The notes below the pieces were generated by a model. That model saw nothing but the letters and a program-made list of their open reading frames with translations. It was not told where the DNA came from and did not search any database. This document shows positions 12,548-36,918 of a DNA stretch of 64,000 nucleotides, piece by piece; the first letter of the stretch is position 1, and every line of letters starts with the position of its first letter. The stretch lies in NCBI GenBank assembly GCA_900088475.1, contig FLMG01003853.1:23059-87058 (forward strand), in the 5' to 3' direction. The translations under genes and the position numbers were made by a program. The DNA comes from Hyphochytrium catenoides. Lineage: Eukaryota > Protista > Hyphochytriomycota.

Positions 12548-15500
12548 TTACTTGTCCCATCGAGCGATGACAGATGACTCTCTGTCATCGTCATATTTTA
12601 TCACCTGCCATTCAGGGCCCAATCAGTGCTTCTTTCGTATCGGTACATTTTGAGCAAACAAGGAAACGCCGCTGAAGAAGTTGGCTCTGCCGTCTTAGCG
12701 ATGAAATAAGGAATGGAAGAACACCTACAACCCCAAGCTCCTTTACCTGTGACTCCAGCAAATGTCCGTGGGTGCCCTCCTGCTCGTCTTCCTCTTTTTC
12801 AAACTGCTTCGTGATAGATAGAATGGTGTTCACTATGCCTTTTTTTGCTTTCGGCCGCTTGGGCACACGCTTCTGAGCATTTCTTTCAGGTCGTGATAGA
12901 CGTCGTTTCGTTCTTCCCATAGACTAACGTAACATAGCAGCCGCGATGTCAGTGGAGTTACCAGCGTAGGAGTCTGACAACGAGGCTATAACAGTTGGAG
13001 AAGAACATACAAAGCCGCACAAACAGAACAACAACACCATGCCCCAAATGGCTTGAACGACTTCCACGGGAATACATGGCCACTTCTTACCAAAGAGAGA
13101 CTGTCTGCACTATCCTCATCCTCAGAATCAAACAGGAGGCAGTCCATCTAGGAAGCAGGCATTTTCGTTAGTGAACCATGAAGAGAATAATCTTATGCAT
13201 AAGGAGTCAGGCGCGAACCCATCCGAACACTTTCGTCACCTTCTTGACCTCACTTCTTTCCTTGTTGGGATGAGCTCCTGTGGGTCCCTCCTTATTTGGA
13301 TCTGATGGTGTGAGGACTGAATGCTTGAAGAGCTCAGGATCAAATCGGAACGGGTCAGATGTTGTCCCGGATTTAAGCTTCACCGTCGTGATTTCATTCT
13401 CTTTCTCTGTCAATGGGTCCTTTGCATCCACTTCCCGGGATTGATTAGACTGACAGTGCGACCCGCTCTTCTTGAGAGGCTCCGCTTTACTGAGTAGTGG
13501 AGTGAGGCTACTTTCCTCTTTTCTTAAGTCAGCACATTTCAAAGCTTCCGGCTCTTCATTATGATGCGTTTTCGCATTCTGAAAGTGCTGTGGTGAAGTG
13601 GCAGCCACGACCTTCTGGGCTTCAGTTTGGTTTTCCGTATCTGTGTGGGCTAATTTTTTGAGTGTGTCATTCATCTTGCCTTTTAGCCCAAAGTCCTGCT
13701 GCTCCAGACCGGTCCCATTAGGGTTGCTCTGCTGCGTTCGCGCGTCATTGTTGTTGATCTTAATGGCCTGAGCCAGGCTTCCTGTCTCCTGCCCGTTAGT
13801 GCTCAGATCCTCGCTATTCTGAAAGTCTGGAGAGTACTTTCCCTCTTGCTGTATAGATCCACTTGTTTGCTCCGCGGGCAAAGCGTTGCACGGAGGGGAA
13901 GGTAGGAGGTCTGATAGAGCGAATTGCTGGTCGTATTCCGGCTTGTACGTCGAGGTCTTCATTATTTCTACCAGCCATTCTGCAGTCACCACTGGGACGT
14001 TCCACCGTTGTGCCATTTCGTACTTCCTGCTCCATCCAGGGCACCGCGAGAGCAGGTGTGTATTCCTTCCTAGAGCAAATGTCTCGTCCACGACGATGCC
14101 CAGACATGAAGCAATGGTGGAGATGGCGCATTTGTCCTCCTTTTTGTGGAAGCGGGTAAGACAGATACGTAGAGAGAGTCCATCAACAGTCCTCAAAGGA
14201 CCAGGAAGGGAACGGAAGAGTTGGTGGGCTTTGGCTCTCAGGGTGCTCCTCGCCTACGTAAGAAGGTCAGACAGCAAGCATCAAAGGTAGGAGGGAAGAA
14301 CTTGAGATGATGCGCTCGACTGAGGGTTGAAGATGAGCACCAAACTAAACATCGTCTGTCATGCCAAAGCAATCTAGAAGTGCAATGCCTTGCCATTGGG
14401 TTACAGACGCACCAGCAGACAAGCCTTCAACCATACTTCACTGACAACATCCGCTCGCGGAAACTTCTTTGCAAATTGGTCTTGTATTGTTCTGGTAAAA
14501 GTTGAGGTGGAGAGAACCAATACATGGGTTACTTGAGGAAACGTTTGTCCTTCTTCCTCTTGATCCGTCTTCTTGAGCCAGCAGCGCCCGCCGTTCGCCA
14601 GGATTGCCGACCGAATATGAGTCATCTGCTCAATCAAAAGGAGTGAGGGGTGGTGAGCTCGTAGGATTTAGCGATTCGTCGCCTGACAAATGCCAACGAA
14701 CACCATACGGAAGGTAGGGCCAACCATTTACTTTTTTCGATGTCCTGGTTAACTTGGAGAGCCTGATCATAATCGTTCTTACATGCCGTTGGTGCCCTTG
14801 CAAATGGGTCACAAAAATAAGAAGACCTTCAAAGACCCCTGATCCTCGGCTTCCCTTGCAGTCCTTTGGATCCTGCTCGGTATCGTCCAATTCGGCCTTC
14901 CTTACACGCAGGGGTAAGGCCCCTGATGCATCAGTGCCTCTTTCCACTTTCGGCAGGTGTGTTACAAGGCTTGTATTCATCACTGAACGACGGCAGATAT
15001 AACATCAGAAGTGAGGAGCAGTCGTTTAGGAGCCTGAAAACAGCCAGCATGATAATATAAAAAGTAGCTTATGGCTTAGAAGCGATTGCGTCATATTCAC
15101 AGCAGGATGATCAGGTCGATCTGACAAGCTTTGATATAAAAACTGTGGTTAAAGAGGTCCTTGACGACCTTACCCCTGTTGAACCTAGGCGGATAATCTG
15201 CTGCATCCTGGACCGCCTGTTTGAGGCAACACTGTACCAGCCATTTTGCTGAGACCACGCTGACCTCGGAGCTGCAAGAACTTAACAGCCTCTTCGCACT
15301 GAGCAAAGTGAGCAATGCTTGTCAGAGTGCTTGTCAGGGAGCCACTTTAAAAAGCTTCGTCAACTGTAAAACCCATTACTGATAATATGATCACTGGAAG
15401 TGTCCAATCTATGGAATAGGATAACTTGGAAAGGATAGTGGCAAATGCATCGAGTCTAAGAACGGATAGCAAGATCTTCACATTTCAGAGACCTGGCACT

Positions 15501-17132
15501 AAGGGTGTCCGCTGTGACAATGTGCGTCAGCCTGTTGTTGGGCTTTGAATATCGTGAGCCCATACCGAGTCGTATCAGTCGAGATAGCCACATCTCTGTC
15601 CCAGGGTCAAACCCAATCAAGAAGATGTGGCATGCATCCAGATAGCGGCCCCAAGATTCAGTTGCAGCATGGTCACTCATCTCCTTCGCACATGAGAGAA
15701 CCTCGTCGAGAAAACTGTCTAAACATTTGACGAAAAAGGAGCGCGTACGTGAGCTAACGGACGACCTGATGCCTTCCACAATCGTATTAGCTGAGGAACT
15801 TACTCTGGAATGAGCGTGAATCAACAGGACGTCTTGGTGAGGAAGAGTTTGATTGTTTTTTCTCTTCAGTTTGCTGTTCTGCTTTAGTGCTTTCCTCATT
15901 CGGCCATTCCTCGCAGACCTCGGTTTCCTCCTCATCCTCCACTTTCTGGGTCGCCTCGCTATCTGGAGCAAGAAGGGCATAATCGCCTTCCGGCAAAGCC
16001 ACTAGATGAAGAGATGCTAAGTAAGCTTCGAGAAGGCAGTAATATAGCAATGACTCAATTGTTGGCCTGACTTCGACCGCTAGGTCAACTAGGCTAATCC
16101 ATCATTCTTCTGGTCTCTATAACCTTCTTTTCTTTGGAGCCTCTTACAAGGAATGGATACCTTTTGTCTTGGCGCTGTCTTCCAACCACTGCGGAGTAAC
16201 AACAGGAATGCCCCACTCCATTGCCGCTTCATATTTCTGCCCTGAAGGGATGTAAAAGGGATAGAGTCAAGGAGCCCCCTAAGAGCGAGATGGACGCACT
16301 ACTATCAGATATAGAATGCATATAGCAAGTGGATTGCTCTACTCGGAAAGGGTAAAGATGCATACAGAGATGACAATCTCTGGTGAGACAAGTGCAGGTA
16401 ATAAATATACCAGCATGTACCCGTAAAGATGCTAAGGGTTTGAGGGCAGAGAAGTATTGGGCAAGGCCACGATATACGAACTGAACAACAAGGATCGGGA
16501 AGTGGTTAAATGGATATTTCCGCTATGAGATGTGTGGTCAAATGGTTCTGGAGAAAGTCAACGTAGCTCCCTCCTTCGTTCTCGACTAGCTTCTGCAGTT
16601 CTTCTCGCCTTTCTGAGGTTGGAGGTTGCGGCCATCACTGACTCTTTTCCCACTGAGAATGTTAACGTACTTACCGCCAGAAATACCAGTGATTGAGATG
16701 ATAAGGCCTGTAAGTGGAAGGAGCTGATGTAGGGAAACATCTGCAATGGCTCCTTTTTCCCAGGTTTCATGTACCCAGGACACCGCAATGACTGGGATGT
16801 TCCATCGGATAGCCGCCTGCGAACAACAAAGACCACCGCGCGGCGATGAGGTTCGACAAACAAGACATCGCCTCCTTGTTAGGTCTGCACCTGGTACTTG
16901 GCTGATCTGGAAGTCTTGGCGACAAGAAAGTTGCAGGATGGTGTGAAGTCCTCCTCAAAAGTCCCTGACATGGATAAGACCATGGACACAAGGTTTTCCT
17001 AGAGAACGAGCGTACCCGCATTAGATGTTAAATTTCAAACCACCTCCTTGGCTCCGGTAACCTTACCTTTTCATCCTTATCTAAGCCAGTTGAGCAAACA
17101 GCCTTCCCCTGTAAAGCGGTGTACCTCTCCAT
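12548..17132 (-). CDS. TOPBP1: TOPBP1/Rad4/Dpb11-like multi-BRCT checkpoint scaffold (about 13 exons)
   Basis: Spliced BRCT repeats: LQGKAVCSTGLDKDEK..NFLVAK..SAKYQAAIRWNIPVIAVSWV; LTGLIISITG..THLIAE|IPSGQKYEAAMEWGIPVVTPQWL; YLDACHIFLIGF..THIV..VVSAKWL; FEGLLIFV..THVL..VVSEVWL; THLL..KYEMAQRWNVPVVTAEWL. The C-terminus is ESQ|VIKYDD. Some internal boundaries are uncertain. Confidence 0.82.
16252..16517 (-). other. U12-type (minor) AT-AC intron in the TOPBP1-like gene
   Basis: Donor GAA|ATATCCATTT, branch site TCCTTGAC (16273-16266), acceptor TTTTAC|ATC. Removal restores BRCT THLIAE-IPSGQKYEAA; read-through hits TAA 3 codons in. Confidence 0.88.
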
Positions 17133-18034
17133 TTTATTCAAGCAAAGCTACTTCAGCTCAACAGAGCAAACGGCAACAATTGCACTTCTCGGCTTGCAAA
17201 GTGAGAGCCACATCGTCGCAAGCCTCACAATTGTCACACCTGCACGGAAGTAGGTATCATGGATGCCTTGAATGAGAGGTTACTTCATGAGTTGCCTTGT
17301 CCCAGCTAAGATCTGAGAGACAAGACTGCACTGCCTGTGAGAGGAAGAGCATGTCGTGGCGTCTTCACGCCACCAACAGCCCGAAGATTAACTTCCAGCA
17401 AACAACAAAGCATCAACCATCAAGCAGCATTGCTGAGAGTGAGATAAGCGTTAGCGGCTGCCAAGCGGCGCGGCATTCATAGTCAAATGACCGTTTTTGG
17501 CGGGAGACGCCTTCATCATACTTCACAAACTCTGCCATTCTTTATCATCGAACATCAATGTGAGGGCCTGATAGAACCGCAGGAACGGACATCTATTAAG
17601 AGCGCTTTGGGTCGTTCCATTGGCCGTCAAGCCTCTGCTCATCATAGCTGCTAGAAACTGACAACGTCAACACGTGTAATAGAGTGCCCTGTCCCTCTAT
17701 CTTGGCTATCATCAAGGGGGCAGCTAACATATTTGATGACTTCGCCACATTCCACGGATCACAGATATTCCCTAGTCCTCCTTATAATAAACTAACTTGC
17801 TCTTGACCCTTGCCGTGGCGGACATCTCTCCCATGGCTAGCTATCGTGTCACCACGAGACCACAATGCTTTGCTCTTTGACTTTAGTGGTCGTAGTCCAC
17901 TTGGAAGTTATTAAGCATTGGTATGACGTTCTGAGAACGATGCGTTATACGAGAGTGCGTAGCATAGATGTACACTTGAGCAGCCAACTAACTATTAAGT
18001 TACTCATATTAGCTGCAAGCCTTCATGGTCCGTC

Positions 18035-19698
18035 TTAAAAGTACTCTCCGGTGGCATACCGCGCTATCTGGTTCTGGAGCAGCATATAGGGAAAAAGATG
18101 TCAGCACATGGAGACCGCATGATAAGAAAGCTCTTCTCCAGCTATGGACGTGAGACGATGCAACTACTGAAGAAATAGCTATCCTGGAAACTTAGTCCCA
18201 GAACCGCCCAATTTGCCATTTCCGCCCTGTACTTAATGCTCCCAAAAGATATATCCCGTCTTACCTTGATGGGCGTGCCAAGGTTTAGCAGGCCTAGCCC
18301 AAAGTTCCTGCCGAACGCGAGAATCTGGTTGTCGTTGCTGAAAAGTCTTTTGAAAGCATCAATGGATCCCTGCATAAGCAGATTCGCTGCCTTCCTTTGG
18401 CTCTCGTAACTCTTCAGAAGCTGTGGGCTGCCGATGTCTTGGCCACTTTCAAAGCCCTTAAGGACGGTGTTGGCCAAAACTTCGGCATCCTTCAGGCCCA
18501 AGTTGAGCCCTTGCCCTGCCAAAGGATGGACCGAATGCGCTGCATCCCCTATGAGGGCTACGCGATCCCCAACATAGCTCGAAGCGTGTCTGAGTTTTAG
18601 AGGGAAGATGAAGCGCTTCCTTCCAGGTAAATCAGTTATTGCGGGCGGTAGCTGAAAAGCCGAAACCGAGTGCGAGGCTGAAATGACTGTCCGCGCCAAG
18701 CCTGCTCCTATATCAGACGCCGTTGAAAGGAAAGGTATGGGTTGGTTCAAGAGGGGAATAGGAGGTATGTCTAGACCTCGGACCACTTCCGGAGGGGTTC
18801 GAAGTGCGTCATTCAACTCTCGTAGAAAGTCTGCTTCTGATAGTCCGACGAGTCGCTTAGCCTCTGCGGGGCTTGTAGACCAGACAATGGAGCTATAGTT
18901 CTCTCTGAGGGGTAACAGAGCTAAAGGTCCTGTCTTCAGAAACCTTTGCCATGCGGTTCTATTCTCTGTCTCGGTCTGTACCGTCGCTACAATAGCGTGT
19001 TGGTCGTATTCCCATCCCCATGTAGGTATATTCTCAAGCTGTCGAATGCGTGACTCACCGCCATCAGCTCCAATCACAAGCCGCGCCGACACAGGGTTTG
19101 GCCTATGGTCTAGTGTGAGCTCTCTCCATCCGGCTGGGGTTTCCGCCGGTCTCATATCCTTCACACTACTAGGGCAAAGTATGTCAATCCGACCCTGCTG
19201 CGAAAGCTCGTGTAACCTTTCGAACAGAGCAGAATGAAGCACGTTGTGCTCAACGATGTAGCCGAGGCAATTGATGCCAACCTCTGATGCATTGAAGCGA
19301 ATGAAGCCATTTCCAACCCCATCCCAGACTTGCATGTGGGTGTACTCGTGGGTCCGCTCACCACTAACTCTGTCCCACACGCCAATGGATTCTAGAAAGC
19401 GCTTGGAGCCCGGTGTGATAGCATAAACGCGCAACTCCGGGACTTTCTGTGATAGAGCCATTGACAAGGGACGCGGAGGAGCTGTCTCGACCAGAGCAAT
19501 TTTCTGGCCCTTTGCCCTCGGAGATGCAGCCAGAGCACAAGCAAATGCGGTGCCAGGAATGCCTCCTCCAGAAACAATTGCATCATAGTCTCCTTCCTGC
19601 TCCGGTACTGCAGTGTAGCTCCGTGCCAGCGAACGGAAAGTGTCGAGCGGTCGTACGGGCCGCGAGGCTCTCCGTACTAGGCGGATTTCTCGTAGCAT
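18035..19698 (-). CDS. COQ6: Ubiquinone biosynthesis FAD monooxygenase COQ6 with mitochondrial presequence (2 exons)
   Basis: DAIVSGGGIPG, MQVWD, LVIGADG, AWQRFLKTGPLALLP and RVALIGDAAHSVHPLAGQGLNLG; final short exon NQIARYATGEYF* after GTPIK|GTAAG. Confidence 0.93.
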
Positions 19699-20394
19699 TC
19701 TTGTGACTTATGAAAGCCCCCAAACAAGGCCAGAGTCGCGCCTACAAGGCCCTATGGAGGAGCTCTCATAGATAGTTTGATGTTCTGCTATTGTCGTGGG
19801 TTCTCTTGGCCGTGACACACTGTCCGAGGTTCATTAACAGCTGAGACCAATGCAAAATGAAGGCTGATGAGACCGAAGAAAATCATTCTTTCCTGCAGAC
19901 AGATCTTCTTTTACTCAATGAATCTCAACAATCTCAACTGTTCTGATGCGAAGCTCTCCGTACAAATATAGCGGTAACTTGAGCGACTATCTCTAGACAA
20001 ATCCTCACCACAAACGTATGCTATTAAGGCTTGTAATTGATTATCTCTTACATTGGAGTCTTTATGCCTTTTGGGGGAATCTGAATTACGACAGTTCATG
20101 GTTATCTGCAGATTTCTGATAACTGCATTGCCTAAACCTGTTCACAATAGGGTATTATTACTACATAAATTTATCACGCTCCACCTATTGCAGGTGTGAA
20201 GGGTTATTACTACATTCGAGACGCTGTAGCACTTGACATTGCGGACTGTTGCTACAGAAAACCGATAACAGAAGCTGCAGCTTCATCGACACCCGGAACT
20301 CAGAGCATCTTCTCTGAGAGACATCCATCTCTGGCTGTCACAGTTCATAGTGCCAAGTCGATTAGGGCCAAGGTCATGACGCTAACCACGTAAG

Positions 20395-22609
20395 ATGAAG
20401 CCCTATCAGGTCGCACGGGGTCTGGTTTGGCTGACCCTGGTAGTTGTCGCAGTATCGGCCCACGTGGCTGCTAATAACATCCGCAGGCGAGCATCAGATG
20501 GCTCTGTCTACGAGTTTGGTCGTTTTCACAGGAAGTTCACCTTCTGGAATGAAGCTATTCCAGAGCAAATTCACATGGCTCTGGGAGATAGCAAGGGTTC
20601 GGGAATAACTATAACGTGGATGACCAAAGCAAAGACGGAGACATCTGTTGTTGAGTATGGAGAGCAACAAACGAATCTAGCTTCTGTTGAGGGAGGCACC
20701 TCTCAGTACCAGTTTAAGCACTACACTTCGGGCTTCATTCATTCTGTCTCACTGTCTGCTCACTCCTTGCGGCCATCCACGCGCTACATCTACCGTTGTG
20801 GGGACAGAGTGTCAGGGATCTGGAGCCCATTTTACAGCTTCACCACTCCTCCGCCAGTCGGAGCTTCAAGCACAATCACTTTTGGCGTAGTCGGCGACTT
20901 GGGCCAGGTGAGAGCTTGTCTGTCTGCGCTTGTCTTGCTCATTCTGCAAACGTTCTGGATAATTGAACCACGGCGGGAGTTATCAGATTGCCTAAGAATC
21001 TTTTGGAGGCATCGGTTAGACCCAAAGGCTCCCTACCTAGTTTCAAAATTATGATGTCTTTAACGATCAAGCAGACTTCTCAAACTTCACTTTGCCTCTA
21101 ACGTCCCTCTTTATTCTAGACCCAGAATTCTTTGAAAACATTGGAGGCGCTCATGATGGACCGAGATGGCTACCCAAAAATTGATGTGATGCTTATTCCT
21201 GGTCAGCTTATATCTTAGGCTAGGCGTAGTCCATAGTAAACCACTCAGCATTGACAGGAGTCTTGCAGGTGATCTCTCATATGCAGACGGGGTCCCTGAA
21301 CGCTGGGATAGCTGGGGAAAGTTGGTTGAGAATCTCACCACTGTGGTGCCACTGTAAGCATGCAATGCACAAATGATGAACTCTTATATCCAGTTTTTGT
21401 CTCATTTCCACCCCGACCGTTAGGATGACCGCTCCTGGCAATCACGAGATCTATGAAGATGAGAAGTTCATAGCTTACAAGGTAATTTAGAAGGACCATA
21501 GGGAGCTGACCTTCATTGTAACCCATTCTCACCGTAGCTTCATCTACACTTAGTACCGGTTTCCGATGCCGGAGGACCCAATAAACAAAGGCAAAGACCG
21601 CCTCTTCTATTCCGTTGATGTCGGACCCACACATTTGATCTTCTTAAACTCCTACATACTGGAAGAAGCGCCCGTCCAGAAAGACTGGTTACAAAGGGAT
21701 CTGCAAAGGTAGTGCTCTATGAAGTAGTGGCTTCGATTATCTCCCAACCTGTAGCAATTCGAGCTCCCTAAGGAGTCCTTTATCAATCCTCTTCCAGACT
21801 TTAGTTCCATCAGCTCGCTTTTTTACTCCGCAACTGCTCATATGTCTGTTGCCTAGCGTCAATCGTGAAAAGACACCGTGGGTCTTGCTTTTCATGCACA
21901 ATCCCTGGTACAATAGCAACTGGGCACATCAGGACGCAGACGAACCGCAGTGGATTCTCAAGCAGGAGTTGGAGACCATACTTTACCGATATAAAGTTGA
22001 CGCGGTTTTCGCCGGTACTTGCCGAGTACAGAGAAACACCTAGACGTGGTCGTGTAGCAACTCATGTGTTCCCGTTCAGGCCATGTCCATGCCTATGAGA
22101 GGACCTATCCTGTCTTTCAAGGGAGGGTTGTCCCCGAGGCGCCGTACTACTTCACTGTGGGTGGAGGCGGCAATAGGGAAGGTATAGTACCTTGCTACCG
22201 TGATTATTCTTACTGCCGAACAGTATGTGCGACCTTTCCTTTTGGCCGCACTTGATAGCTTCATTTCTGGTGCACAGGGGCTTTTAGCTAACCTTCGACT
22301 TCTGCGCTCTGAATACTATTTATTCTTGGAATTTTTTCTTCTAAACTCATGCCTCTCTAATTCCGCTGTCTAGGTTTAGCGGATGCGTTTATGGATCCTC
22401 AGCCTGAGTGGTCAGCTTTCCGCGCAGCCAAGTACGGAGGAAGCCGCATAGAGGTCTTGAACGCCACCCATTGCCGGATAGAATGGTTCTCGAACGATCA
22501 GTTGTTGCAACNNNNNNNNNNNNNNNNNNNNNNNNNNNNNNNNNNNNNNNNNNNNNNNNNNNNNNNNNNNNNAAGTTCAGCTGCTGACGTTTGTCACACA
22601 GCACAGTGA
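20395..22609 (+). CDS. Secreted purple acid phosphatase (at least 8 exons; 3' end obscured by N-gap)
   Basis: Signal peptide and N-terminal domain PEQIHMAL..ITWMT; metal-binding motifs GDLG, GDLSYAD, GNHE, FMHNPWY, GHVHAYER and GGNREG across GT-AG-spliced exons. Confidence 0.93.
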
Positions 22610-22822
22610 CGAAGTGCAAAAGGAGAGTCCGTAGCTTCTTAGAATACGTATGAAACCAACCTCGGACTATGGCGATTTGACAAGTATATTACCAGTACAC
22701 TATCTACTAGTACAACTAATCCCAGTAATAGCTTCACGCAAGGACGCATCACCTAGCTGCCCGGGAGTGTGTAACAGAGTGTCCGCTGATTCCGACAACT
22801 AACTGGGATGCAATGTTAAGAC

Positions 22823-24332
22823 TTACAAGCCTTGAGCCAATCGAGAAAGAAAGTCAGAGGCCATTTTCTTTGTTGGAGAGTCTGTTAAAGAGTTTTGGGT
22901 AGAACCAATCGTCTCCCCCGGCTTGTCCTCCTTTTCTCTGGATAAGCTTGATGGGGCAGCTGTCCCGCCTCCTTTCTTTGCCTTCAACTTTGCTCTCCTT
23001 TCGGCAATTCGTCTCTCCCTTTTATCATCTTTATGTTGCGTCCTCACCGCGTTGGTCGTCTTTGTCATTTGCTGCAGATATTCTTTCTCCTGTTGGCTAA
23101 AGCCGTGCTCCCATTGCGATGTGACGCCAGCCCCCTGTATGTTGGGTCCGGTCCCTGTCCTACTGCTACGATAGGGTTAGCCATCTCAGGAGTGTAGAGA
23201 ACAAGCAAATTCCCGCACAGGACAGACGTTGAGAGCAGCAGGGAGCAGAACTAGCAGTGAGGTCAGCAAAGCTTGCCGAGTCCCATAGGCGAAAGACAGA
23301 GCGTGAGAATGGCACCCAATCTAAATCAAGAACAACAAGAGAGCACTTCCCGGCCTCTGCTGAACTAGCTTTCACTAACCTCTCGTCTGTCGCCAACGAC
23401 GGGCCATTTGGTTCTTTGTGACGCCTCAAATATTCCAGGTGCGCAGGACTACCCTTGGCCACAACGATAACTCTGCCAAAGTCGTCCTCAATTTCCACGG
23501 TATCTCCCGCGCCCGACAGCGCTTGTGACTTCGGGGATGGGCTTGGAGAAGGAGAAGCATTACTCGGGTACGATGTACCACCAGTCGTTTCCACCTATAA
23601 GAAAAGCGTTGAGCAAAGTAATTGTAAACTGAAATTGTCAGAAGGTGATTGAGATCAAGTCGCAGGCCAAGACGCGTACGGGCCAGGGTGAAAACTTTCA
23701 GCAGACAGAAATATGACGGAATTATTGAGGGAGAGATCAGGCTCTACCCAGCATGCAGAAGTAGCTCATCTCTACACTAAGGGCAGACTTTTGGTGGAGA
23801 GTCAGGGAGTGACACGTGGAGAAAATGCGGGCGAAGTACCTTCTTCTTGAAGTCCACCAGAAAGCTCCCTTTGGCATCCGGCGGTAGAGGTTGCCCCTTG
23901 GATAGCTTTTCGTATAGCGCGGCCTTTCTTGCCAACGCCTCCTGTGAAGCCCTTAACTTGTCTTCCGTTTGTCGAAATTCTTCTTCCTCGGCCTGATTAC
24001 GGTCATCTACCCCCTGCATTATAACAAAGCAAAGATGGAAGCGATGGCTGAGTCGCTAAAGCTCAAATGTAGCCCTGGCCTGCAGCTTTCAAACCAAGTC
24101 TCACCTTGTTCTTCTTATTGAACAGTTCATCTGCTCTTGACCCTGAAGGCCTAAATTTCTTGCCCACTACTCTTCTGACTCCTGGTGTGCCCGCTATTGC
24201 CTTGGTCTCTTCTAGCTCTCGTTTGTGTTTGTGTACGACTGCCTTCAGATCAAAGATTGAGCTGGAATCGACTTTGATTGGCTTGGCCTTGGATGGCAGC
24301 AAGGCCGACTCTGTCAGAAATCCCATCGACAT
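22823..24332 (-). CDS. CCDC174: CCDC174-like coiled-coil protein (4 exons)
   Basis: MGFLTESALLP..DLKAVV, KNK|GVDDR, ALARKAALYEKL..FLVDF, VEIEDDFGR and RIAERRAKL match my recollection of the CCDC174 family pattern. Confidence 0.65.
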
Positions 24333-24408
24333 CTTTACGAAAGATAAGATAGCCACGACTCCGCTTTAGAGCAAGTTAGAGTACTGCCGAGAGATTCTCA
24401 AGAAAGCC

Positions 24409-24506
24409 TTTGCTTGCGCCAAGACCGTGCAAACACTAGTCCTGCACACGTTCTGGCTTTTGCTTGCGCCAAGACGTGCAAACACTAGCCCTGCGCGACG
24501 TTCTGA
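24409..24506. repeat. Imperfect ~50-bp tandem duplication upstream of the CCDC174-like gene
   Basis: TTTGCTTGCGCCAAGAC(C)GTGCAAACACTAGYCCTGC..ACGTTCTG occurs at 24409 and 24459. Confidence 0.9.
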
Positions 24507-25352
24507 CAGGTGACAATCGCCCACACAGAAAGAAAAAGCGTTTCTGCAAGTTAGGCAGCGGAGGTTCACTCCTCAATTCTGATTGAAGCTTTGTGTCAAA
24601 CGACGCTAAGGTGCGCACATTGCAGTAGATGGGGCCCCTCTAATGACACATTATGCCAATACGGTCGTGTGGTAGAAGCCTTAAAAGGGGAGAGAGCGCA
24701 CCAATTGCGCCCACACAACAGCAGATTTTGTACTTCCTTGTCACTTGATGGCGAAGGGTAATGAAAGAGCTTCTTTATGGTTCTGTTTTCCTGCCGTTGT
24801 TTGTCTCCAGGAGACACGCGGTGCCACTTCCTCTTTACCATCGATCGCTCTCTCTCTCCTCTTTCCGCTCTTCCACTCTTCAGTGTGAAGCAGCCCCTCT
24901 TCCTCGTGCGGCAAGGTGGTGGTGGTAACAACAAAATCACAAGACACTGATAGACAAGAAGACCGACCTGTCCACCAGCTTTGGCTATCAACTTTCTTCC
25001 TTCTCCTTCCTACGCAGTACGCAGACAAGACTCTCACTCTTCTTACCCTCATCCCCTATGTCCTCTTCAATATCCTTCTAGTGAGTTGTTGGTAGGCTCA
25101 GCGCCCATCTCACTGCACAGCGTGTCCAGGGCATGTCTTTAATGTGTTTATGTGTTCCGAGGATGGCACTCTCGGATTCTCCTAACATCTAAACAATCAA
25201 TAGTATGTGTGGCGGGAGCACTGAGCCAATCGGACGCCCAAATAAATAATAGACTACTTCTAATGATAACGATCAAGCAGTGGTATCAACCACCAAGAGC
25301 TGGCAAAGCAGGAGCAGCGGTAAACAGTGGCAGAAGGCCCGGAAGTCTCGCG

Positions 25353-28300
25353 TCAATGCATCATCCGTTCTTGAGAGGATGTTGAGGTAGTTGATGGTGG
25401 GCCAGCTTCATACGGCAGCACACGCACTGTATCATCAGCCATGGCGGCTGCCGCTGCGGCCGCTGCTTCCAAAGCTTCTGTCGGGATGGCTGGAAAAAAA
25501 GTAAGGATGAATACTAGTTAGAGCTGTTACTCAGTTGAGCAATTGGACGACACGAATAGCCAAATAAACCAAGAAAAAAAAATAGAGGTCTGGGGCAAAG
25601 CTTACAGGGTTTCCGACCCCATCTTAGGCTTCTCATTCGGCCGAAGTTACTCCCAGGAGTCGGCGGAGTTTGTGGGTGGACTCCGCCTGTCGTCGGGCTC
25701 TCATTGGAAATGTTGAAAGGGAGCACAATCTGTTTCGGTGGGGTGATGGACTTCTTCCTTTCCCGTATAGCGGCGGTTTCTTCGGGGGAGAACTCAAGCA
25801 ACGTGGTCAGGACAGGCTCTAAACTCTTTTGACCCGGTGAACCTTCGGGCAAGGTCATATACTAATAAGGAGGTCATTAGCTGCTCTTAGCCTTTACGAC
25901 AGTTAGATAGAGATCAATCAAACTGAGGAGGGGGGAGGGCACAACGAAGGGGAACCGCGTCAGCAAAGCGACATCGAGACAAACCCGGAAAGATGAGCAG
26001 CATTGAGGAACAGGAAGTCTCGGTAATTCTGCAGAACGACCTATCATACCTGGAAGACGATGTTCTTGAGATATTCCATATTAACCCCTAGATAAAAGAT
26101 CACCAGCAAAGTTAAAACTTCTTAGCATTAGGCCGAAAGAAGAAAGACGCATCTTGCCTTCTCGTCGCCGACTTTTTAAGGCGTTCTCTGTCTTCTTCTT
26201 CTCTGCGTTTAGCCGATCACTGAAACTGGCAAGTTCCTGCGGTTTGGGTAGCAGCACATCAAGTAAATGCCCTTAAGAGCACGAGGGGAAGCTAAAGAGT
26301 CCGCCTGAGTACCTCGTTAGCCTCAATGAGCTTCCGCTGCAATGTCTGAATCACTTCTTGCTGAGCTCTAAACTCGACATCTCTTTGTGCCTGCAAGCAT
26401 CAGCCGATAAGATAAAGGTGTCTTCGTACAGCCAGAGTCTCAAATATAATATTTGTGGAATGTTTATGATCCAAAACTTAAAATGCCAGGGATTGTATCG
26501 TGGTAAAGCAGAGAGACACAGACCTGGAACTGCGCATATTTGAAGATCCTTCGATCGTCAGCGCTGCCACTTTCCACTTCCTGATTGTTCAAGATTTATA
26601 AGTCAGGTTATACCTCTCGTTCAGTAGTCTGTCACGATATACGCGACTCGCGTACCTCTTGAAGTTTTTTTAGTCTTTCTTGTAGGGCTTCGACTTCTCT
26701 TTCTCGTTCCTCGACGAGCTGTCGAGCTAGCCGCTGCTTGTGCTTGAACTCTGCATCCTGCCGGCGCATAGCCGCCATCAAATCCTCCTTCTACAAGCGC
26801 ACTGCAGTTGGTCACCCTGCTTCTTGAGAAACTTGAAAGGTATTGATTTTGAAGGAAATTGCTACTGCTGAGTGCAATCACTACGTAACCTACTTGATCT
26901 TCGAGCTCTTTTGCTCGGGAGTTGTTGAGTCTTAGGATCTCCTCTTCCTTCTCACTTAACGCATAACTGAAGGAAGCCTCTTTCTCCTACACCAGATTGG
27001 ATTAGTTAGTCTGTGTGGGGAAGCCCCATCAAAATCCTAGAGCGCAGGTAACTATGGCCATCCTCTTCCGTCCTCATTCCTCTCCTTGCTGATCTTTTCC
27101 TTAGAAATATATCGCAATTTCTCACCTCAAGAGTCCTCCTGACCCGTGCAAGCTCAATCTCGACCTTTCTACATTTTTCAACCGACTTTTTCCTCTGCAT
27201 TCAATGGCAAAATAAGGAAGAAGGACGGATATTAATGGGAAGAATACGAGCGTGAGGTCATTTTCCGCAGGGAGATGTAGTGGGGCACATAAAAGAATCT
27301 TCAAAGTGAGAACAACAAATATACAGAGCGCCCCAATTCAAGAGAGGGAAAGATTGCGGACGACCAAAACATCGCTAGTAGTTTTCTCTCCCATAACCTT
27401 TGCATGTAAGATCGACCAGCAGATAATCGGGGGCTCAACGATATTTAACACGGATGGACATGAAGGTCACGACGTAGCATAGAGATGGGTAGCGGTACGA
27501 CAAGGGTCTCTTATATGAAAACAAAGGAGTGGCTTATCCTGCAGGAAATAGAAAACGACGAGGCTCGTGAACCGTTTACCTCATCCATCTCCTTGTCATA
27601 CTCATGCTGCAGCTGTTCAAGCTCCGCTTGGACTGCCGCCGCCTGAGCAACCCGTTCAGCATGAATTTCAGTCGCTCTTTCCTTTTCTTTTCTCAGCCGT
27701 TGTAAGAGGGAAGAGCTTTCGACTGCCTTCGTTCGGAGCTCCGATAGTTGCTTGAGTGAGACAATTGGAGTAAGAAGCGGAAATTTGACTAGGGTACAAG
27801 GGCCAGGCAACGCGGCATCAGGAACGGTATGCAAAAGATATAGAAGGGACAAAAACGGCTGAGTCTTCTAACTTTAGCTGCTTCTTCACCTGGTTGATTG
27901 CCTCGTTATTTTCCTTTAGCACCTTAATGTGTGCCTTTAGATCTTCATTTTCTGAAGCAAGTGATTGCAGGTCTGACTCCAGCCCAGAAACACGGCAGGT
28001 GGCGCTCTCAAGAGCCTAACGGCAGAGACTCAGTGCCCAGAGTCGACTGCCTATGGCTTACATAGTGTTTACGACTAGACTGCGTCAAGGCGGGAATCGA
28101 GCAGGAAAGGACGAATACCTAACTCAGACCAGAAGAGTGCGAGTCGGAAGAGACGCCCCGAAATGCTTGGCTTTATAGCTTTACCTCTTCCAGACGCTTC
28201 GAAGACTCAGACTCGTAAGTGGCGGCTTTGAAAGTCAGCAGAGCCTAGGGACGGAAAGCGGGAAGCATAACTTATCCAGAGAACACGAAGAGCTGATCAA

Positions 28301-31300
28301 AAACCAGAAGTGTACACAACAGTATATAGATGGTAGTCAATTTCAGTGGCAGGATACACTAGACAGTAATAAAAGGGTGAGAAAACGTCAAGAAGGAGAG
28401 GTTCCACTATGAGAGTAATCGCATCATTTAGATAGATAACTGAGATGTACCTTTTCCTCTTGCAGCGCAGCAATTTTATCGTCATAGGACCTCAGCCGAT
28501 CCATCCAATCCTAGCGGAGGAGGGAAAGTCAGTATCTCATCTCAATTGTGAGACTACTTCTAGCAGAGCCCTTTCACAATGGAAAGGGTAAAGTCGCCCC
28601 AGATACAGGGCATAGAACTGAACGCTGAAGACACGGTCGCCTCACCTCTTCTTTCTTGAGTAGTGTATTGATGCTGTCATCTTTCTCTTGTATGTTTGAT
28701 AGAAGGAGGTGCTTCTCCTCCCTTTCTTTTCGTAATTCTTCCTCCAAGGACTCTAAGTTTCTGAAACATAGGGGATTTATCACATATGTGCCATAGACAA
28801 ATCCGTGCATCAGAATTGGTTCTAAGCTCAGAGGTTAGCGGCGCCTCGTCGCTTCTTGGCTTCAAGTTACCTATTAGCCGCTTCCAGCCGTTCCTCTAGC
28901 TGGTCGCGCGCTGCTTCTGACACCTCTAGCTTCTTAGTCAGCCCTGTCTCGCTCTCCTCTAACTTGAGTGTAGTCAACCTCAGAGTTTCACATCGTTTCA
29001 AAGCTGAGCTAAGTTGGGCCTACAAATGTTCGAGCCCAGGTGAGTCAGCTGAAGGGCGATATGACTGGATGCGAGAACACTAAGTGTTTCGCAATCAGTG
29101 AGTACTGGCAGTGCTTGTGATGACAGCAAGAGTCACACTTAAGGTTGCGGAAACTGCAGCCAGCTTGAGGAGGCGCATTGAATAGCGATTTCACCGCATT
29201 GCGCCTAAGCAGAAAAATCACACAGAGTAAAGATAGCTCCAAGTAGCGACTAGTACATCGAAGTGGTTACTAATACTTTAGAGGAGTAGAGGAAGGTCTC
29301 CGTCTCAAGGCAGGGAGATGACAAATTAATGACCAATCCAGGCGAAGTATTCAAAAATGCAACTTCTTCAAATTGCAATCACCTCTAGTCTTTCAGCAGC
29401 TTGTCTGTGCACCCTTTCTCCATTCTGCAAATCAAGTAACTGATCCTCTAGTTCTTTCTGCTGAATCTCCATCTTTGAACGCTCCTCTGCCCATGCTGAT
29501 TGGTGCTGTCCAAGCAACTCCTCTGAGAGCTGAATTGCATCCAAAAAGTATTATGTGAGAATCCCGAAGGGAGAAAGAGGTAAACGCACGAGCAGAGGGC
29601 CGGCTCATGGACAGAGAAGTACAGGAAACACTATTGTTGCAACTCTCGCCAAAGTGTTGCCGTCTTAGGCCCCCAGCAGTCCCACCAATAGTGTCAACAT
29701 TGTCGTCTCCTATTGTTCTCAGTTGCAGCTAGGCTCAGTCCATCAAGTATGCATCTGGGCACATCTTACCTTCAATTGCCTCTGTAGAATATCGTCCTTG
29801 GACAGGGGGCTGCCGTTTGTCGCCGTCATGGATTGGTCCCCAGTATCTGAGACCTAGACGATCGGGCGAGTCAGTCAGCCTGGACTTCCCAAGCTCACCC
29901 TTATATCACGTGCCCAACGTGACCGCTGTCTCATTCTTGGCATGTCCCCTTGACATATGCTTTAACCGGGAATATAGCGGAGAATCACAACTAGTCTTCT
30001 CTCACCTCCTTAACCAGGTCTTGGAGTTTGAGTTGGTGTTGCAGGTCTAGTATCTGTGCACGCTGCTGTGTGTGTGCTTTTTCCATCTCTGCTGTGAATC
30101 TATTTCGCTCAGCGTGAGAAAAAACGAGTTAAGGTGCATGAATGATGAGCGTCGAAGAACACCATGAGCCATACGAGAAAGAGAGAAGTGAGCGGAAAAG
30201 TGGTTGAAAGAGTCAGTTCTCGCTAAACGCTCCAGTATGGGGTTGGAGAACATCCGTCGCAAGGGAGAGCAACAATAGTACAATGTGGCGCAAGAGGGAT
30301 GGAGCAAAAAGCACAGTTATCAGAACTAAGCAAGGGGTCAAGGTCTCTCAAGGCTCCCAATGCCCATGTCTAGACTGTAATAGAACCAAAGTAGAGCAGA
30401 GATCCACGAGAAGGGGATCTTGATAAAGTGTGAGGTGGATATGAACAACGCTCGCTTGATATCCCTCAATGCTGCGTCCCTGCCTTCCTCTTTCTTCCGC
30501 CACAACTTCAATAGCTTCTTCCCGTCGACAACATTATCATTTCCTCTATCTGAGACGAGGACCCAAGAAAGAAGTTCAACAAACCATAAAAGCTTTTGGA
30601 ATCTGAGAAAGATGTTGGTTCACCGTCATCAGCCTGTAAGAGAGTAGAAAGAAATGATGCCTTTGGTTCAAGAGCGAAGAGACCGACCTTCAACCTTCCC
30701 ATCCTCTTGTTCTTCCTCCTTTCGATCCATTGCCTCCCTCTTCTCCTCCAATTCCGATCCTTCATCTAGCTGGACTGTCTTACGGATTCGTGGAACCTCT
30801 TCAATGCCCAACGTCTGCTTAGCGAAGTCTTCCAGGACTTCTAGGTCAAGGTGGACTGCAGCTCGTCGGGCGCTCTCTTCAAGCAACTGGGCACGAAGGA
30901 TCTTGTTCTGCTCATGGAGGTTCACGGTTGATTCGTACAAGTCCTACGCAAGCAAAGAATAAGGTTATCAAAAGCCTGCTGCGGAGGTAAAGAAGAAAAG
31001 ACAGAGATATGGAGACATAGAGGAGAGGGAGGCCAAGGGAAAGAGAGAGAGAAGCCAGGCAGAAAGAGACAGAGAACGAGAGAGAAACACAAAGGAATAG
31101 GAACATAGAGAGGAACCGGTAGGAGAAATTGAACAGAAGGGATCACAGGCGTATAACGAGAGGAACAGAGAAACAAGGGATGACGAAATGGGAGACTGAG
31201 GAAGAAGCGCGGGTCGATGGGTTTGTGTAGATGGTAAAGTTAAGAGGGAGGAAGGTACGATGAGATGGACCATCGGGACTAACTCGCCTGGTAGGAGAGT

Positions 31301-31557
31301 TGATCAAGCCCGTCACTGCTGATCGGCCCATTCTCTGTTGCATCTCTGCGTCCAGCGGTGGCTGTAGCCGAGCTTCCTGCCTGGGCCCCATCTGAAGCTG
31401 AGTGCTTCAAGAAACTGAGGCCCTTCAGCCCTTTACTGATGCCTCCGGAGAGGTCAACGGAGCTTGCCGCTGAAGAGACGGAGGAGGAGGCTACAGACGA
31501 CACTTGAGAAGCAAGCTTCTTCGAGGCCGTAAGACCCTTCTCGAAGTAGTTGCTCAT
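25353..31557 (-). CDS. GRIP-domain golgin-like coiled-coil protein (about 20 exons; includes two GC-AG introns and one AT-AC intron)
   Basis: E/K/L/Q-rich heptad exons ending in the GRIP motif GVNMEYLKNIVFQ|YMTLP..LEPVLTTLLEFSPEE; start MSNYFEKG at 31557, stop TGA at 25353-25355. Confidence 0.85.
30114..30442 (-). other. U12-type (minor) AT-AC intron in the GRIP golgin gene
   Basis: Donor TTC|ATATCCACC, branch site CACCTTAAC (30136-30128), acceptor TTTCTCAC|GCT; phase 0 join gives ..RDIKRALF|AERNRFTAEMEK... Confidence 0.82.
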
Positions 31558-32762
31558 CCTGCCCTATCCGCCTTGGTCGGCTCTATCCGCACACGCCCAT
31601 GAAGATTACTCTTGCTGCCACTAGAGCACAAATCGTCCAAGACATAACCTGCAAGAGACCATGTGTTGCTGCGCTTATTGCTGGAGATTATATGTGCTGA
31701 GAGAGGCTTCGCACTTCGTGAAGGTGTGACCTACGCCTCGTTGAAAGACGATGATGGAGCTTGATAGGAGCAAGCTCTCGGTCCCTTCAGCAGCGTCGCG
31801 CATCTCTTCAACTCTTGTCCGAAGTAGTCTTTCTGCTGCAGTTCTTGACCCCATAGAGTTCTACTACTCCACTGTGCTTCTGATGAATCTTTGAGCTACA
31901 GTACAATAACCTAGGTACAGTATTTTTATAGATGGATGTCTGTCTTGCATTGAAACTTGCTATTCATTGTCGCATGGCTTTTTCAGAGCTTCAAGTTCCA
32001 CAACCAGGAGCGTCCTGTCCGTCAAGACCGCTCTTCTTCATGTTTCTTTTGGTGAGATGTGGCTCGCAGTTTGCTATGGTGATCACTAGGAAATAGTGCG
32101 TAGCAAGGAAGGAGGAGAGGACCTTCGCTCCCCTAATAGTGCTTAGTCTGGGAAGATGAAAGGGACGCCATCCGGTTGGGTCAACTCTATAAGGCGCCAA
32201 GCACCGCTGAGTGAAGTGAATAGGAGTGATGCGATGATATTGCAAGAGGGATATGAGATGGGAGGTCAACTTTGTCACGTCAAAGCGTAGAGGATGAGGA
32301 AGGTTGGGATGAGACGCGTGAACCAAGGGCAGACTAGATAAGAAGTGATTTTCTGAAGGGGAAGACGGCAATGCTTGAAGAGATGACAGTTCAAGAGACA
32401 TGTGCCATCGGCTGGGAGTTAAAGCGCAAAAGGGAACTCTCTGATGGAGTTAGACGTGTTCCTGCGCATTGACTATCTGCAGCAAGACTGCGATGGGCAG
32501 AAGGTCCCGACAATGGAAGAAGGGCCATCTACCGGCTAGAAAACTTGGCAGAAGCGCTAGGACCGCCTTATGTATGCCGGAGACGGTGAATAAATATACT
32601 AGGAGTTTGCACCTTGATAGTTAGTGGGTCCACTATCGTCACAAACGAATAGATAAACGGGCCTTGGGACGAAGAAGTGGCCATCGCTGATGAATGACAG
32701 GATGCCTCTGAGCATAAGGAGCAACGTGCTATCGCTGCAAGGTGAAGAGGCGTCATATGGTA

Positions 32763-35700
32763 CTAGAAGCTCAACTTTCGTCGGTGCACGTGGTTGATAG
32801 GAGAGAAGCGAAGGCGACTCAATCCTTCTGCACCTCGAGGGGCTGCCTGATCCAATCTGGGAATCATGTCTAAGTTCTCTAAAGATTGTCGAGCCTTTGC
32901 TTGAGAGTGACTTGGAGACCCTCTCTTGGCCTTCAGTGTTGCAGCAGAGGGAGAAAAAGCAGCAACTGCTTGAGAGAATGAGAGATTTTTCACCAGACTA
33001 GCTAGACCTAGATGGATAGCTGTGACGACCACGTATATGAGGTAGATTTTTCTCGAGACCAGATTGAAAGACTGCGCCTTGCTCATGAATAGCAGTGAGA
33101 ACTCCCCAAGCTGGAGAGAGAATTGAAAGAGAAAATGGGCCACGTAAGACGTTGGGAGCAAGAATGCCACACGATGCACCTTGAATTGAAGGAGACAGAC
33201 AACAGAGAATTTCTTCTAAATGCGTTGGAAGCCGCATGAAGAGTGCAAAGCCCAGCGATGTTTCAAGAAGGGATCAAGCCTTATAACTGCTTTACCTGGG
33301 ATAGAGTCACGGCTCCCTGCATCGCATCCTGTGAAGATGAATGGAAGAACCTAAGGACGCCATAAGACACTAGCACCTTTATTACCCAGAGCTGGACTGC
33401 TAAGACTGATATCTGCAACAGATGTGTCCAGACAAAGTACTGGAGGAACAGAGCAATGATGTCAGTCAACTTGCCTGCCACAAGGCCCACCCTAGCATCG
33501 TGTAAGCTCCATCATAAGAAGCAATGAAGCACCGGTTAAGAAGCGCGAAGAGGAAGCCAGAAAGCAACAGCTTCAATCGGTGGGCTTGACGACAGTTAAG
33601 GCCCCAAAATTATGGAGGGGAAAGAGGCAGGTTTATAAGAGATTAGGCAAGAGCATCTCAAAGTAACACGCCCCCGAAGAAGGCAGCAGCGCTAATGAGT
33701 TTCTACAATTCAGGGTTCCATTACCGGGCTGAGGATCATACCAATCGATGCAAAGTACATCGAGCCAAAGAGATGGTCCAGCGGGCCAACAAGCTCCGCC
33801 ATGATTCTGCAATAGCGTGGCCGCATGAAGGCCAGCCCAGCGAAGAACGCGCCTGCCTCCAAGGAAAGCCCGAGCAGCTACCCAGCAAGTATGATAAAAA
33901 AAAACCATCAAATTCAGTAAAGGAGGGCACGCCAGCAGAAAGTATAGCTCATCTAATACACTGAGCGGCCCTCGCGCTTAAACTTCTCCCAACTTCTACT
34001 GTTACTTTCCCCTTGTTTTCCTTTACTGGCTTGACATCCCTCCTGATCCAGCCCACATTGAGTCCGTACCTCTGTCAGCAGAGCCACGCTGAGGCAAGTG
34101 CTAATCATCCCTAATAGGACAACAGATTTTTCACTACTCTCGTCTCCGTCATCATCTTCATTTTCCTTCGGAGCTTCTCCAGATACCAGCTCAAACATTC
34201 GTGGTATGATATAGTGGGTAAGGGTCCATAACACACTAAACACTGACAGATACGACAGGATAGCCTGCGTTCAGGACTTATTAGTCAATTGTGATAGGAC
34301 AGAGAGCCCACAGTAATGCTTCTCAGACGCAGAGTGGTACAACGAAGTCAAGTGTAGGTCCAACCAGGTAGGAGCTTCATTTTATAGGTGACAGCTAAAA
34401 GAGATAAATACGTCCTGCCATAAAGGAGATCTGAGAGAGAGAGAGTAGGGCAAGTAAAGTGGCCGGGTCTCGAGCATAGTAGTAAACTAAGTACCTTCAG
34501 TGACTGCAGCCAGAAGAGAGAAGCAGACTCAGCAGCAAGAATGGCTGGGGCTGCCATAATAAGCCCCATTGTCAGGTCCTGCACAGCTACTATATGCCGG
34601 AGAAGGGCCAAGAAGGGCGATGGAGAGACGTGGCGCTCTTGGAGGAACTCTAAGTGTTAAAGGTGAGAAAGAAGACGAAGCATTGAACAAAGTATTTAGC
34701 CACCTGCACTTAGCTCAAGAACTCGTTTTGAGGAAGCGAAGCAGGAAAAGAGATAAAGAGATAGTAAGACACATCAGCCATTGCCCGCCTGTTGTGTACA
34801 AATGCGATAACCCAAAAGAATTGGAAACCCAGGAATCGCCTGTCTTACCGATGGCTAACCTTGTGGAGGACAGAGCGGAGGAGACACCCAATAAATAGCC
34901 TTCAAGAAGTGAACCGACTAGCCCGCAAAGAAAGAAGGAGAAGGTCGTCAGGATCATGGTTCCTAGAACTGTTCCTCCTCCCCCTATGAGGTATTGAGGT
35001 TCCACCTCTAGGCGGCTTTTCACCGTGAATGTGGAGCCATGGGCTAGGGTAGGAGGGGAGAGAGAATCAGCATGTGATGATAGAGAACTCAAACGAGTTT
35101 ACGGAAAGACAGGATGAACTCACCAAAGAGGACAAAGAGACTCCCAAAAAGAGAGACTGTTTCCACCTATGAGGACGGAAGAACATAGAAACGCGGTTTA
35201 ACCAGTGCCCTCCCTCGACTTGAACACCAAAACGGTGGAATGGCCAGGACCTTGATGCTAGTCCCCTCCACTTTCTCCGCCTCACACCATTCTTTTCCTC
35301 TCTAGGTCATCACAGCCCAGATCAGTTCCACATGCCTCCCCACTATTATTGTAAATATATGCTATTGGCCGAGGACGATAGGGTTGCTTGTGCTCGATGG
35401 GATCTTTCTCAACTTCTTCACTCTCACCCTACCCTATCACCTTTCGTCCCTTTGTGCACATCCTTCGGTGGCTCCCGGATATGGAAGGTCCTTACCTTCT
35501 GGAACTGCTTGACGATAAAAAGGCCAGAAGGTCCAACAATAGATCCCGCCACAATGTACCCAAATGCAGGCGGCAGACGGCAATAAGAAGACAACAGACC
35601 TCCAAAAGCAGCAGCAACGATGAGAACAGCAATCTCCCATAGGAGTGGGAGGTCGTGGTGTAGGACCTACATGAAGGCAATGGAAGAGATTACAAGTCAA

Positions 35701-36918
35701 AGAAGCGAAGTCCAACATAGGTTACGCGAGAGCTAACCATTTTAAAGCGCAAACTGAGGACTGCTGAGGTTCCAGAACCAGAGGTTTGCGCTCGGGAAGT
35801 GACAGATGAAGCCACAAACTGAATAAAAGGTACTCACAGCAGGGTCAGCTTCTTGTCTTATTTCCTGTAGCTTCTCGAGCTCCTCTGCTGGAAGGTCGGC
35901 TCCATCCTGGCAAGAACAAAGAGGTCGACATCGTGAGCATGCGCCTTGGAACAGCAAAAGCGTAAGACTAATCCGCTGGGAAAGGGAAGCTCCAGCGTTC
36001 TCACTCCTCCAGGGTATGCTTTCACCGTGCTAGACCATCCTCTAAGCCTGACATACCAAGATGTCTCCAGTCTCAAAGTCTAGAACTCCTTGTAGTCCTT
36101 CCTTTCTAAGTTGTTGAACATGTTCTTCAATATGATGTTTCTTTAAGTGCTCCTCCAACGATGAGATCAGCTCTTGGCGCACACTCTCTTCCTCCTCTAC
36201 GTTTTCCAGGCCTTGAATGCTATCAGTTATATTCAGGACAACTTGGGACAAACTCTCTCTCATCTGTTGGAGATATGCCGCAATTTTCTCGACCTGATCG
36301 TTGCTTTTTTCTATGGCAAGCTGAGTGAGAGGGGCGAAAGTATGGAAGGTAGAAGATCTCCTACTTTTTGTTCGCGTGCCTTTGCCTTTAGCCTTCGTTC
36401 CCTTCTCACCGACCGGAGGTTCAGAAGCCTCAATGTTCTGCAGTCTGGCCAATTGTAACTCCAGCTAAGGGCCAAGAGGAAGAGATCATCAGAGAAGGTA
36501 CACTTTTGAAGGGCGAACCAGGACAGACAGAGAACTTGCGTCACTAAATGCGTCCGCATGTGTGTAGTCCTAGGTACTGCCCACATGAAACGAGATCTAA
36601 CATCGAGTAAGGTCATGGTAATTCCTGTAGCGCATCATACGCCACGGTCTGTTCACTTCTTACATTCTTTTTGATGTCGTTCAAGCGTTCCTGGACCTCG
36701 TCCACCTCGGGCGGTCTCGGTCCATTGGAGGTTGGGGTGCCGTCATGATCCGCTATCGCAGACGTTACCTCGGCCTCTCTTTGCTCGACTCCTTCCGAGC
36801 CGCTAGGGATAAGAGCTACATCCTCCTGATGTGGCACGTGGGATATGCCGGCATTGACAACGCATCCGACAAAAATAAAAAGCACGAGGGAGAAAAGGCT
36901 ATGCCTTGAGGAGGCCAT
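32763..36918 (-). CDS. CPA2-family K+/H+ antiporter (KEA4-6/TMCO3-like) with signal peptide and N-terminal coiled coil (about 10 exons)
   Basis: DPA|VLHHDLPLL..FGYIVAGSIVGPSGL, ALSST, AVQDL, LGLSLEAGAFFAGL, FASIGMILSP and LSQ|LGEFSLL. Confidence 0.88.

Follow-up and report, generated by a model that had tools for sequence, protein, structure and literature searches.

Among the oomycetes, the sister lineage of the hyphochytrids, minor (U12-type) introns as well as U11, U12 and U6atac are known (PMC10639083, PMC11347168, PMC2846911). U12-type AT-AC introns occur in Phytophthora sojae and Phytophthora infestans, where minor introns amount to just a handful, and by the dozen in Saprolegnia; they carry the ATATCC core in the donor and a TCCTTAAC-type branch site near the 3' end. 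For Blastocystis, another stramenopile, minor introns of about 40 nucleotides (nt) were described, 77% of them AT-AC and 49% in phase 0 (Larue and Roy 2023, PMC10639083). The sole known expansion of minor introns with co-evolved signals and small nuclear RNA (snRNA) is that of Physarum polycephalum, in which about 12% of the introns are minor and mostly not conserved, non-consensus donors are tolerated (+6T among them) and the branch site is TTTGA at 9-12 nt from the 3' end, for which the U12 snRNA has undergone a corresponding change (Larue, Elias and Roy, 10.1101/2020.10.12.336362). Here we describe minor introns in a stretch of 64,000 nt from Hyphochytrium catenoides (assembly GCA_900088475.1, contig FLMG01003853.1, positions 23,059 to 87,058), referred to as the window in the following and numbered from its first letter. 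The genome paper of this organism makes no mention of U12 or AT-AC introns (PMC5795050), and the genus Hyphochytrium is unnamed in the main text of two surveys of minor introns (Larue and Roy 2023, PMC10639083; Olthof et al. 2024, PMC11347168). According to our analysis the window probably contains two genuine U12-type AT-AC introns, intron A in a TopBP1/Rad4-like gene and intron B in a putative GRIP-type golgin gene, together with a minor-like GT-AG intron, intron C, in the TopBP1-like gene. We take them to be retained introns clustered by chance and not members of an expanded or re-tuned system.

All three introns were found on the minus strand where the initial annotation had placed them, and each donor reads RTATCCA as it had reported, with A at position +7 (ATATCCA in introns A and B). 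The RTATCC core is present in all three, the extended RTATCCTT in none. A branch site of the TCCTTRAC type near the 3' splice site is found in introns A and B and is missing in intron C; a U12 branch site about 15 nt from the 3' end is hence a property of the two AT-AC introns and not of the third. Intron A (266 nt, phase 0, 16517 to 16252) interrupts the second BRCT domain (BRCT2) of the TopBP1-like gene. Its donor, gaa|ATATCCATTTAA, occupies 16506-16517 and its branch site, TCCTTGAC, 16266-16273, followed by TCTATCCCTTTTAC|atc. The terminal AC is at 16253-16252, and the branch adenosine is followed by 15 nt of intron. The upstream exon (16518..16612, minus strand, RREELQKLVENEGGSYVDFLQNHLTTHLIAE) is covered by a BRCT alignment, is preceded by a U2-type intron (16613-16674, minus strand, GTAAGT...CAG) and ends in ...NHLTTHLIAE. 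In the unspliced sequence the frame hits a TAA three codons beyond the donor, and the sequence offers no GT donor near the junction.

Splicing out intron A at its AT-AC termini restores both frame and protein: THLIAE|IPSGQKYEAAMEWGIPVVTPQWLEDS continues into the exon between introns A and C (16161..16251, minus strand, IPSGQKYEAAMEWGIPVVTPQWLEDSAKTK). The join THLIAE|IPSGQKYE aligns without gaps to residues 195-268 of human TOPBP1 in BRCT2 (E 3e-23), and the spliced peptide together with the preceding exon forms a BRCT domain of full length (positions 4-77 of the 78 in PF00533, E 2e-18). In an exhaustive search the spliced peptide was alignable to about 30 TopBP1/Rad4-like homologues. Because of the gapless alignment to human TOPBP1 and these homologues, the predicted junction of intron A can be considered secure. 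We found no paper on TOPBP1 as a known minor-intron gene, and no loci related to its BRCT2 were found in metagenomes.

The age of the two introns in this gene was investigated by fetching the genomic loci of homologues and comparing their spliced translations with the annotated proteins. In Aphanomyces euteiches a U2-type intron of 40 nt, gag|GTAACG...GTAG|cat (L002:998-1037), is situated at THLIAE|HPEGAKY, and in Saprolegnia parasitica one of 52 nt, gaa|GTCGGC...ATAG|caa (L005:809-860), at SHLLAE|QAGGAKY. Codon boundary and phase of both are identical to those of intron A. No intron was present at this position in Phytophthora rubi, in the mucoromycete fungus Calcarisporiella thermophila or in a metazoan-type TopBP1 (DS469616.1, a record which we take to be Nematostella). 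At the position and phase of intron C, Aphanomyces also carries a U2-type intron (aag|GTTTGC, L002:1129-1177); in the fetched Saprolegnia locus there is none. Since positions and phases are common to oomycete introns, introns A and C are both older than the divergence of the hyphochytrids from the oomycetes.

Conversion of intron types runs chiefly from U12 to U2. In combination with the position shared with the Saprolegniales, this makes intron A most simply an ancestral minor intron, which would have been kept here, converted to U2 type in the Saprolegniales and lost in the Peronosporales. An expansion by gain would predict the reverse of such a history, which was traced for one intron. The recent gain that characterises minor introns in Physarum is not seen for intron A, and the comparison of intron positions in orthologues, which the initial annotation had proposed as a check of its expansion claim, speaks against a gain. 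As a separate observation, the U2-type orthologue in Aphanomyces holds the motif ACCTTGAT (L002:1015-1037), 12 nt from its A to the AG end; this could be the remnant of an earlier U12 branch site, or mere coincidence.

Intron C (159 nt, phase 1, 16160 to 16002, minus strand) is a GT-AG intron in which a minor-type donor, GTATCCATT, follows an exon ending in AAG. The donor reads aag|GTATCCATTCCT and the 3' end ...GAAGCTTACTTAGCATCTCTTCATCTAG|tgg, which is rich in pyrimidines (...CATCTCTTCATCTAG). No good U12 branch site is present in the intron. The closest match, ACTTAGC, deviates in its second position (A in place of C) and carries a G where the branch adenosine would be, and a U2-like CTTAC is located 20 nt from the end. 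It is in accordance with the U2 branch regions of the window, which are enriched for the classes TTACT/CTTAC, CTAAC and TTGAC. Minor-type donor, weak minor branch site, exon A-2 G-1 and pyrimidine-rich 3' end together correspond to the minor-like or hybrid introns of Olthof et al. (2024, PMC11347168), although these were classified by trained position weight matrices and by responsiveness, whereas intron C is assigned by its sequence features. In that study, minor-like introns with G at -1 did not respond to inhibition of the minor spliceosome and were viewed as conversion intermediates.

Intron C might nevertheless be truly U12-dependent, which would raise the count in the window to three. 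Its donor would be a poor choice for the major spliceosome: U2 donors of the window have A or G at +3 in 89%, A at +4 in 68%, G at +5 in 70% and T at +6 in 46%, so the GTATCC of intron C, with T at +4 (15%), C at +5 (7%) and C at +6 (15%), represents a weak U2 donor. ACTTAGC also shows the 15-nt spacing of the branch sites in introns A and B, and a true U12-type intron adjoins in the same gene. These points are opposed by the weak branch match itself, by the CTTAC and the pyrimidine-rich 3' end, by the exon end AAG with its -1G and by the plainly U2-type orthologous intron in Aphanomyces. In view of this, we consider U12 dependence of intron C doubtful, albeit worth keeping in mind; the intron is best read as minor-like or hybrid and is probably removed by the major spliceosome.

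Intron B (329 nt, phase 0, 30442 to 30114, minus strand) is located in the coiled-coil part of the golgin gene. Its donor, ttc|ATATCCACCTCA, lies at 30431-30442 and its branch site, ACCTTAAC, at 30128-30135, followed by TCGTTTTTTCTCAC|gct; exactly 15 nt, closing with the terminal AC (30115-30114), come after the branch adenosine. Removal of the intron links the upstream exon (30443..30549, minus strand, ...RDIKRALF) in frame to AERNRFTAEMEK... (AERNRFTAEMEKAHTQQRAQILDLQ...) in the downstream exon (30006..30113, minus strand), which ends at a GTGAGA donor. Just upstream, the downstream open reading frame (ORF) is closed by a TAA within the branch site of intron B itself. For comparison, all frame-keeping GT/GC donors in the upstream ORF were combined with AG acceptors in the downstream ORF and scored with donor and acceptor matrices trained on the window, with a reference set of 63 introns. 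The best alternative reached a summed score of -3.0, as against a 5th percentile of +0.3 and a median of +4.8 for the reference introns; among all these pairs there is no usable GT/GC-AG alternative for the golgin junction.

The gene looks like a golgin by C-terminal pieces resembling a GRIP domain, as judged from the translations. One such piece, at 25353-25858 (minus strand), ends in ...EPVLTTLLEFSPEETAAIRERKK and resembles the end of that domain. At the other side, the crude gene finder merged the golgin with the gene of a multi-pass membrane protein (32255-36918, minus strand); the boundary between the two probably falls somewhere within about 31000-32250.

A modelling artefact could produce the same picture at this junction, if an exon had been missed, if other splice sites were used or if the segment were untranslated; in that case the TopBP1 intron would be the sole minor intron. 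The upstream frame remains open for 34 codons beyond the donor of intron B. Another AC at 30316 has ACCTTGAC 22 nt upstream, and the donor ATATCCACC could pair with canonical U11 and U6atac at +4 to +6 only. We nevertheless regard such an artefact as improbable, since ATATCC falls exactly on a frame-preserving boundary, the 15-nt spacing of ACCTTAAC equals that of the branch site in the verified TopBP1 intron, the join does not interrupt the coiled-coil sequence, a good GTGAGA donor closes the downstream exon and every GT/GC-AG alternative scores well under real introns. Intron B is therefore treated as a probable AT-AC intron.

By every cis criterion that could be tested on the DNA, introns A and B appear to be real U12-type introns. 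As two such introns are present, the lineage must, on this reasoning, have a working minor spliceosome. No minor snRNAs were found in the window by Rfam, neither at the gathering threshold nor at E<=1. Similar to minor introns of Blastocystis, introns A and B are AT-AC and in phase 0, a sample of two being too small for any claim of bias. They differ from them in length (266 and 329 nt compared to about 40 nt).

The donors deserve closer consideration, as positions +7 to +9 read ATT in the TopBP1 intron and ACC in the golgin intron. Positions +8/+9 are TT in intron A, CC in intron B and TT in intron C. The canonical boxes are AAAAAGGG in U11 and AAGGAGA in U6atac. Both snRNAs pair with donor positions +4 to +9 (PMC11347168), and according to the '5' rule' of Bartschat and Samuelsson (2010) effective splicing needs RTATCCTT, with C to T at +5 or +6 as the only change allowed (PMC2846911). 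Measured against this consensus, ATATCCATT of the TopBP1 intron is off-consensus and ATATCCACC of the golgin intron more so. The Phytophthora U12 donors listed in the supplement of the same paper are RTATCCTTT in all six cases, whereas those of the window have A at +7. In comparison, A at +7 was counted by eye in 4 of the 19 Physarum RTATCC donors supported by expressed sequence tags (ESTs) in one part of that supplement (PMC2846911).

From the shared A at +7 the initial annotation suggested a co-evolved or relaxed recognition by U11 and U6atac. A lineage-wide change from T to A with compensating changes in both snRNAs finds no support in the window: the donors disagree at +8/+9, which argues against one compensating snRNA change for both, and the third intron is probably not U12-dependent. 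The U12 snRNA would need no change, because the branch sites are canonical. We read the A at +7 as a tolerated mismatch; perhaps +7 to +9 are less tightly constrained in this lineage.

In a stronger version of this idea, hyphochytrid donors would be recognised chiefly via ATATCC and the branch site, with +7 to +9 relaxed or re-specified, U11 and/or U6atac changed opposite +7 and a density of minor introns considerably higher than in oomycetes. We give this version little credence; if true, hyphochytrids would join Physarum as an independent second example of an snRNA evolving in concert with a core splice signal.

To judge the local frequency, introns were counted with a crude self-trained gene finder in non-overlapping models, which gave 77 introns in the window. 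The published genome contains 67,332 introns averaging 208 bp in length (PMC5795050), a density that corresponds to about 66 introns per 64 kb. The roughly 90 introns initially counted are thus plausible. Minor introns account for 2 of 77 (2.6%), or 2 or 3 of about 77 if intron C is considered. At an ordinary density of 0.3%, two or more per window are expected with a probability of 0.023, i.e., in about 23 of the roughly 1027 windows of the genome. The local frequency of 2-3% is a small-number, post hoc statistic. Having been singled out on account of this cluster, the window tells us little about the genome at large.

The pair ATATCC ... CCTTRAC N8-16 AC was observed three times, compared to a mean of 0.88 in shuffled sequences, and at least two occurrences were obtained in 21% of the shuffles. 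Taken by itself, this motif pair is no rarer than expected at random; the support for the introns comes from reading frames and homology. RTATCC occurs at 57 sites in the window, with about 62 expected, which is no enrichment, and RTATCYTT is not enriched in the window either. A relaxed scan of the window gave no further convincing U12 candidates, only implausible pairs. One candidate, GTATCCTG at 28357, was rejected since it lies inside another intron.

The expanded, Physarum-like complement of a few percent put forward initially, with a consensus shifted to RTATCCA and co-evolved U11 and U6atac, can draw on the A at +7 in both AT-AC introns and the minor-like one, on the local count, on the precedent of co-evolution in Physarum and on the +7A donors seen there, but is very unlikely, given that the TopBP1 intron is ancient and not gained, the branch sites, in contrast to those of Physarum, are canonical, the differing +8/+9 of the donors argues against a single snRNA change suiting both, RTATCC is not enriched, the relaxed scan added nothing convincing and an ordinary density already predicts many windows with two minor introns.

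With two retained U12-type introns and one minor-like intron, the following mechanism can be proposed. U11, and later U6atac, would pair with donor positions +4 to +9, and U12 with TCCTTRAC, leaving the branch adenosine bulged 15 nt from the 3' end. With A at +7, the helices of both U11 and U6atac would contain a mismatch, and the golgin donor would be mismatched at +8/+9 as well. As recognition would be carried by the invariant ATATCC core and by a branch site that is perfect and well placed, these mismatches would be tolerated. The TopBP1 intron would represent an ancestral minor intron of which U2-type conversion in the Saprolegniales and loss in Phytophthora are the later fates. The lineage would have retained more minor introns than its oomycete sisters, with no new gains, and two of them in one window would be a chance cluster under an ordinary genome-wide density.

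Several points weigh against this interpretation. Both AT-AC introns violate the RTATCCTT rule, while +7T is found in six of six Phytophthora donors, and A at +7 in two of two introns is unlikely under a strict consensus, a hint that the consensus may be somewhat relaxed in this lineage. The junction in the golgin was derived by frame logic only. Further, no RNA run was listed for 15500-17500, and the runs of any type that match the window comprise DNA runs of the organism, two soil metagenomes and a single run from a different organism. What can be read directly from the DNA are the sequences themselves, the junction in TopBP1, the conservation of its intron position and a golgin without GT-AG alternative; actual splicing, pairing with the snRNAs and the genome-wide density are inferred from these.

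The genome of H. catenoides had been sequenced with two GAIIx lanes and a HiSeq lane at 312-610x coverage, deposited as an update to a previous BioProject, and was assembled to 107 Mb first and then to 65.7 Mb of Platanus scaffolds; it is diploid, with 1.39 million single-nucleotide polymorphisms (SNPs) (PMC5795050). The DNA runs matching the window (two from 2011, one from 2017, one study) gave contigs totalling 101 Mb at a word depth of about 412x. Four sequencing runs were assembled over 13000-18900 and yielded genomic contigs with no splice joints. In the genomic run X1, two haplotypes of about equal depth were resolved over 15879-17907. Dense SNPs and small insertions are clustered in introns, e.g., at 16047-16131 and 16422-16496. 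None of these variants affects a donor or branch site of the three introns.

Between the TopBP1-like and golgin genes, and clear of all three introns, the window contains an assembly gap of N's (22512-22572). It lies inside the last, C-terminal exon of a purple acid phosphatase gene on the plus strand, which has its Pur_ac_phosph_N domain at 20395-21054 and a C-terminal ORF at 22391-22609 that runs across the N's. The COQ6 (ubiquinone monooxygenase) gene at 18142-19698 (minus strand) is intronless, encodes 518 amino acids and is flanked by intron-rich genes. Its best named matches are all oomycetes with only 44-45% identity; the protein database was without proteins of this organism itself, and the exact COQ6 sequence is not on record. 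The enolase of the window shows 73-75% identity to enolases of ochrophytes, oomycetes and plants. A weak Rfam match to mir-14 at 47840-47909 (plus strand; 31 bits compared to a gathering threshold of 53, E 0.011) is almost certainly due to chance.

The window adds, for a hyphochytrid, an AT-AC intron proven by homology and a second, probable one, which is a sound but modest result. Donors with A at +7 are a small, real departure from the textbook RTATCCTT and, taken alone, no sign of a new system. As anticipated initially for standard predictors, programs restricted to GT-AG or to GT-AG and GC-AG introns would mis-model both the TopBP1-like and the golgin gene. At a single intron position, three states are encountered: U12-type in the window, U2-type in the Saprolegniales and absent in Phytophthora. 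Read as an ancestral minor intron, this three-state series in TopBP1 would illustrate minor-to-major conversion and loss among the pseudofungi.

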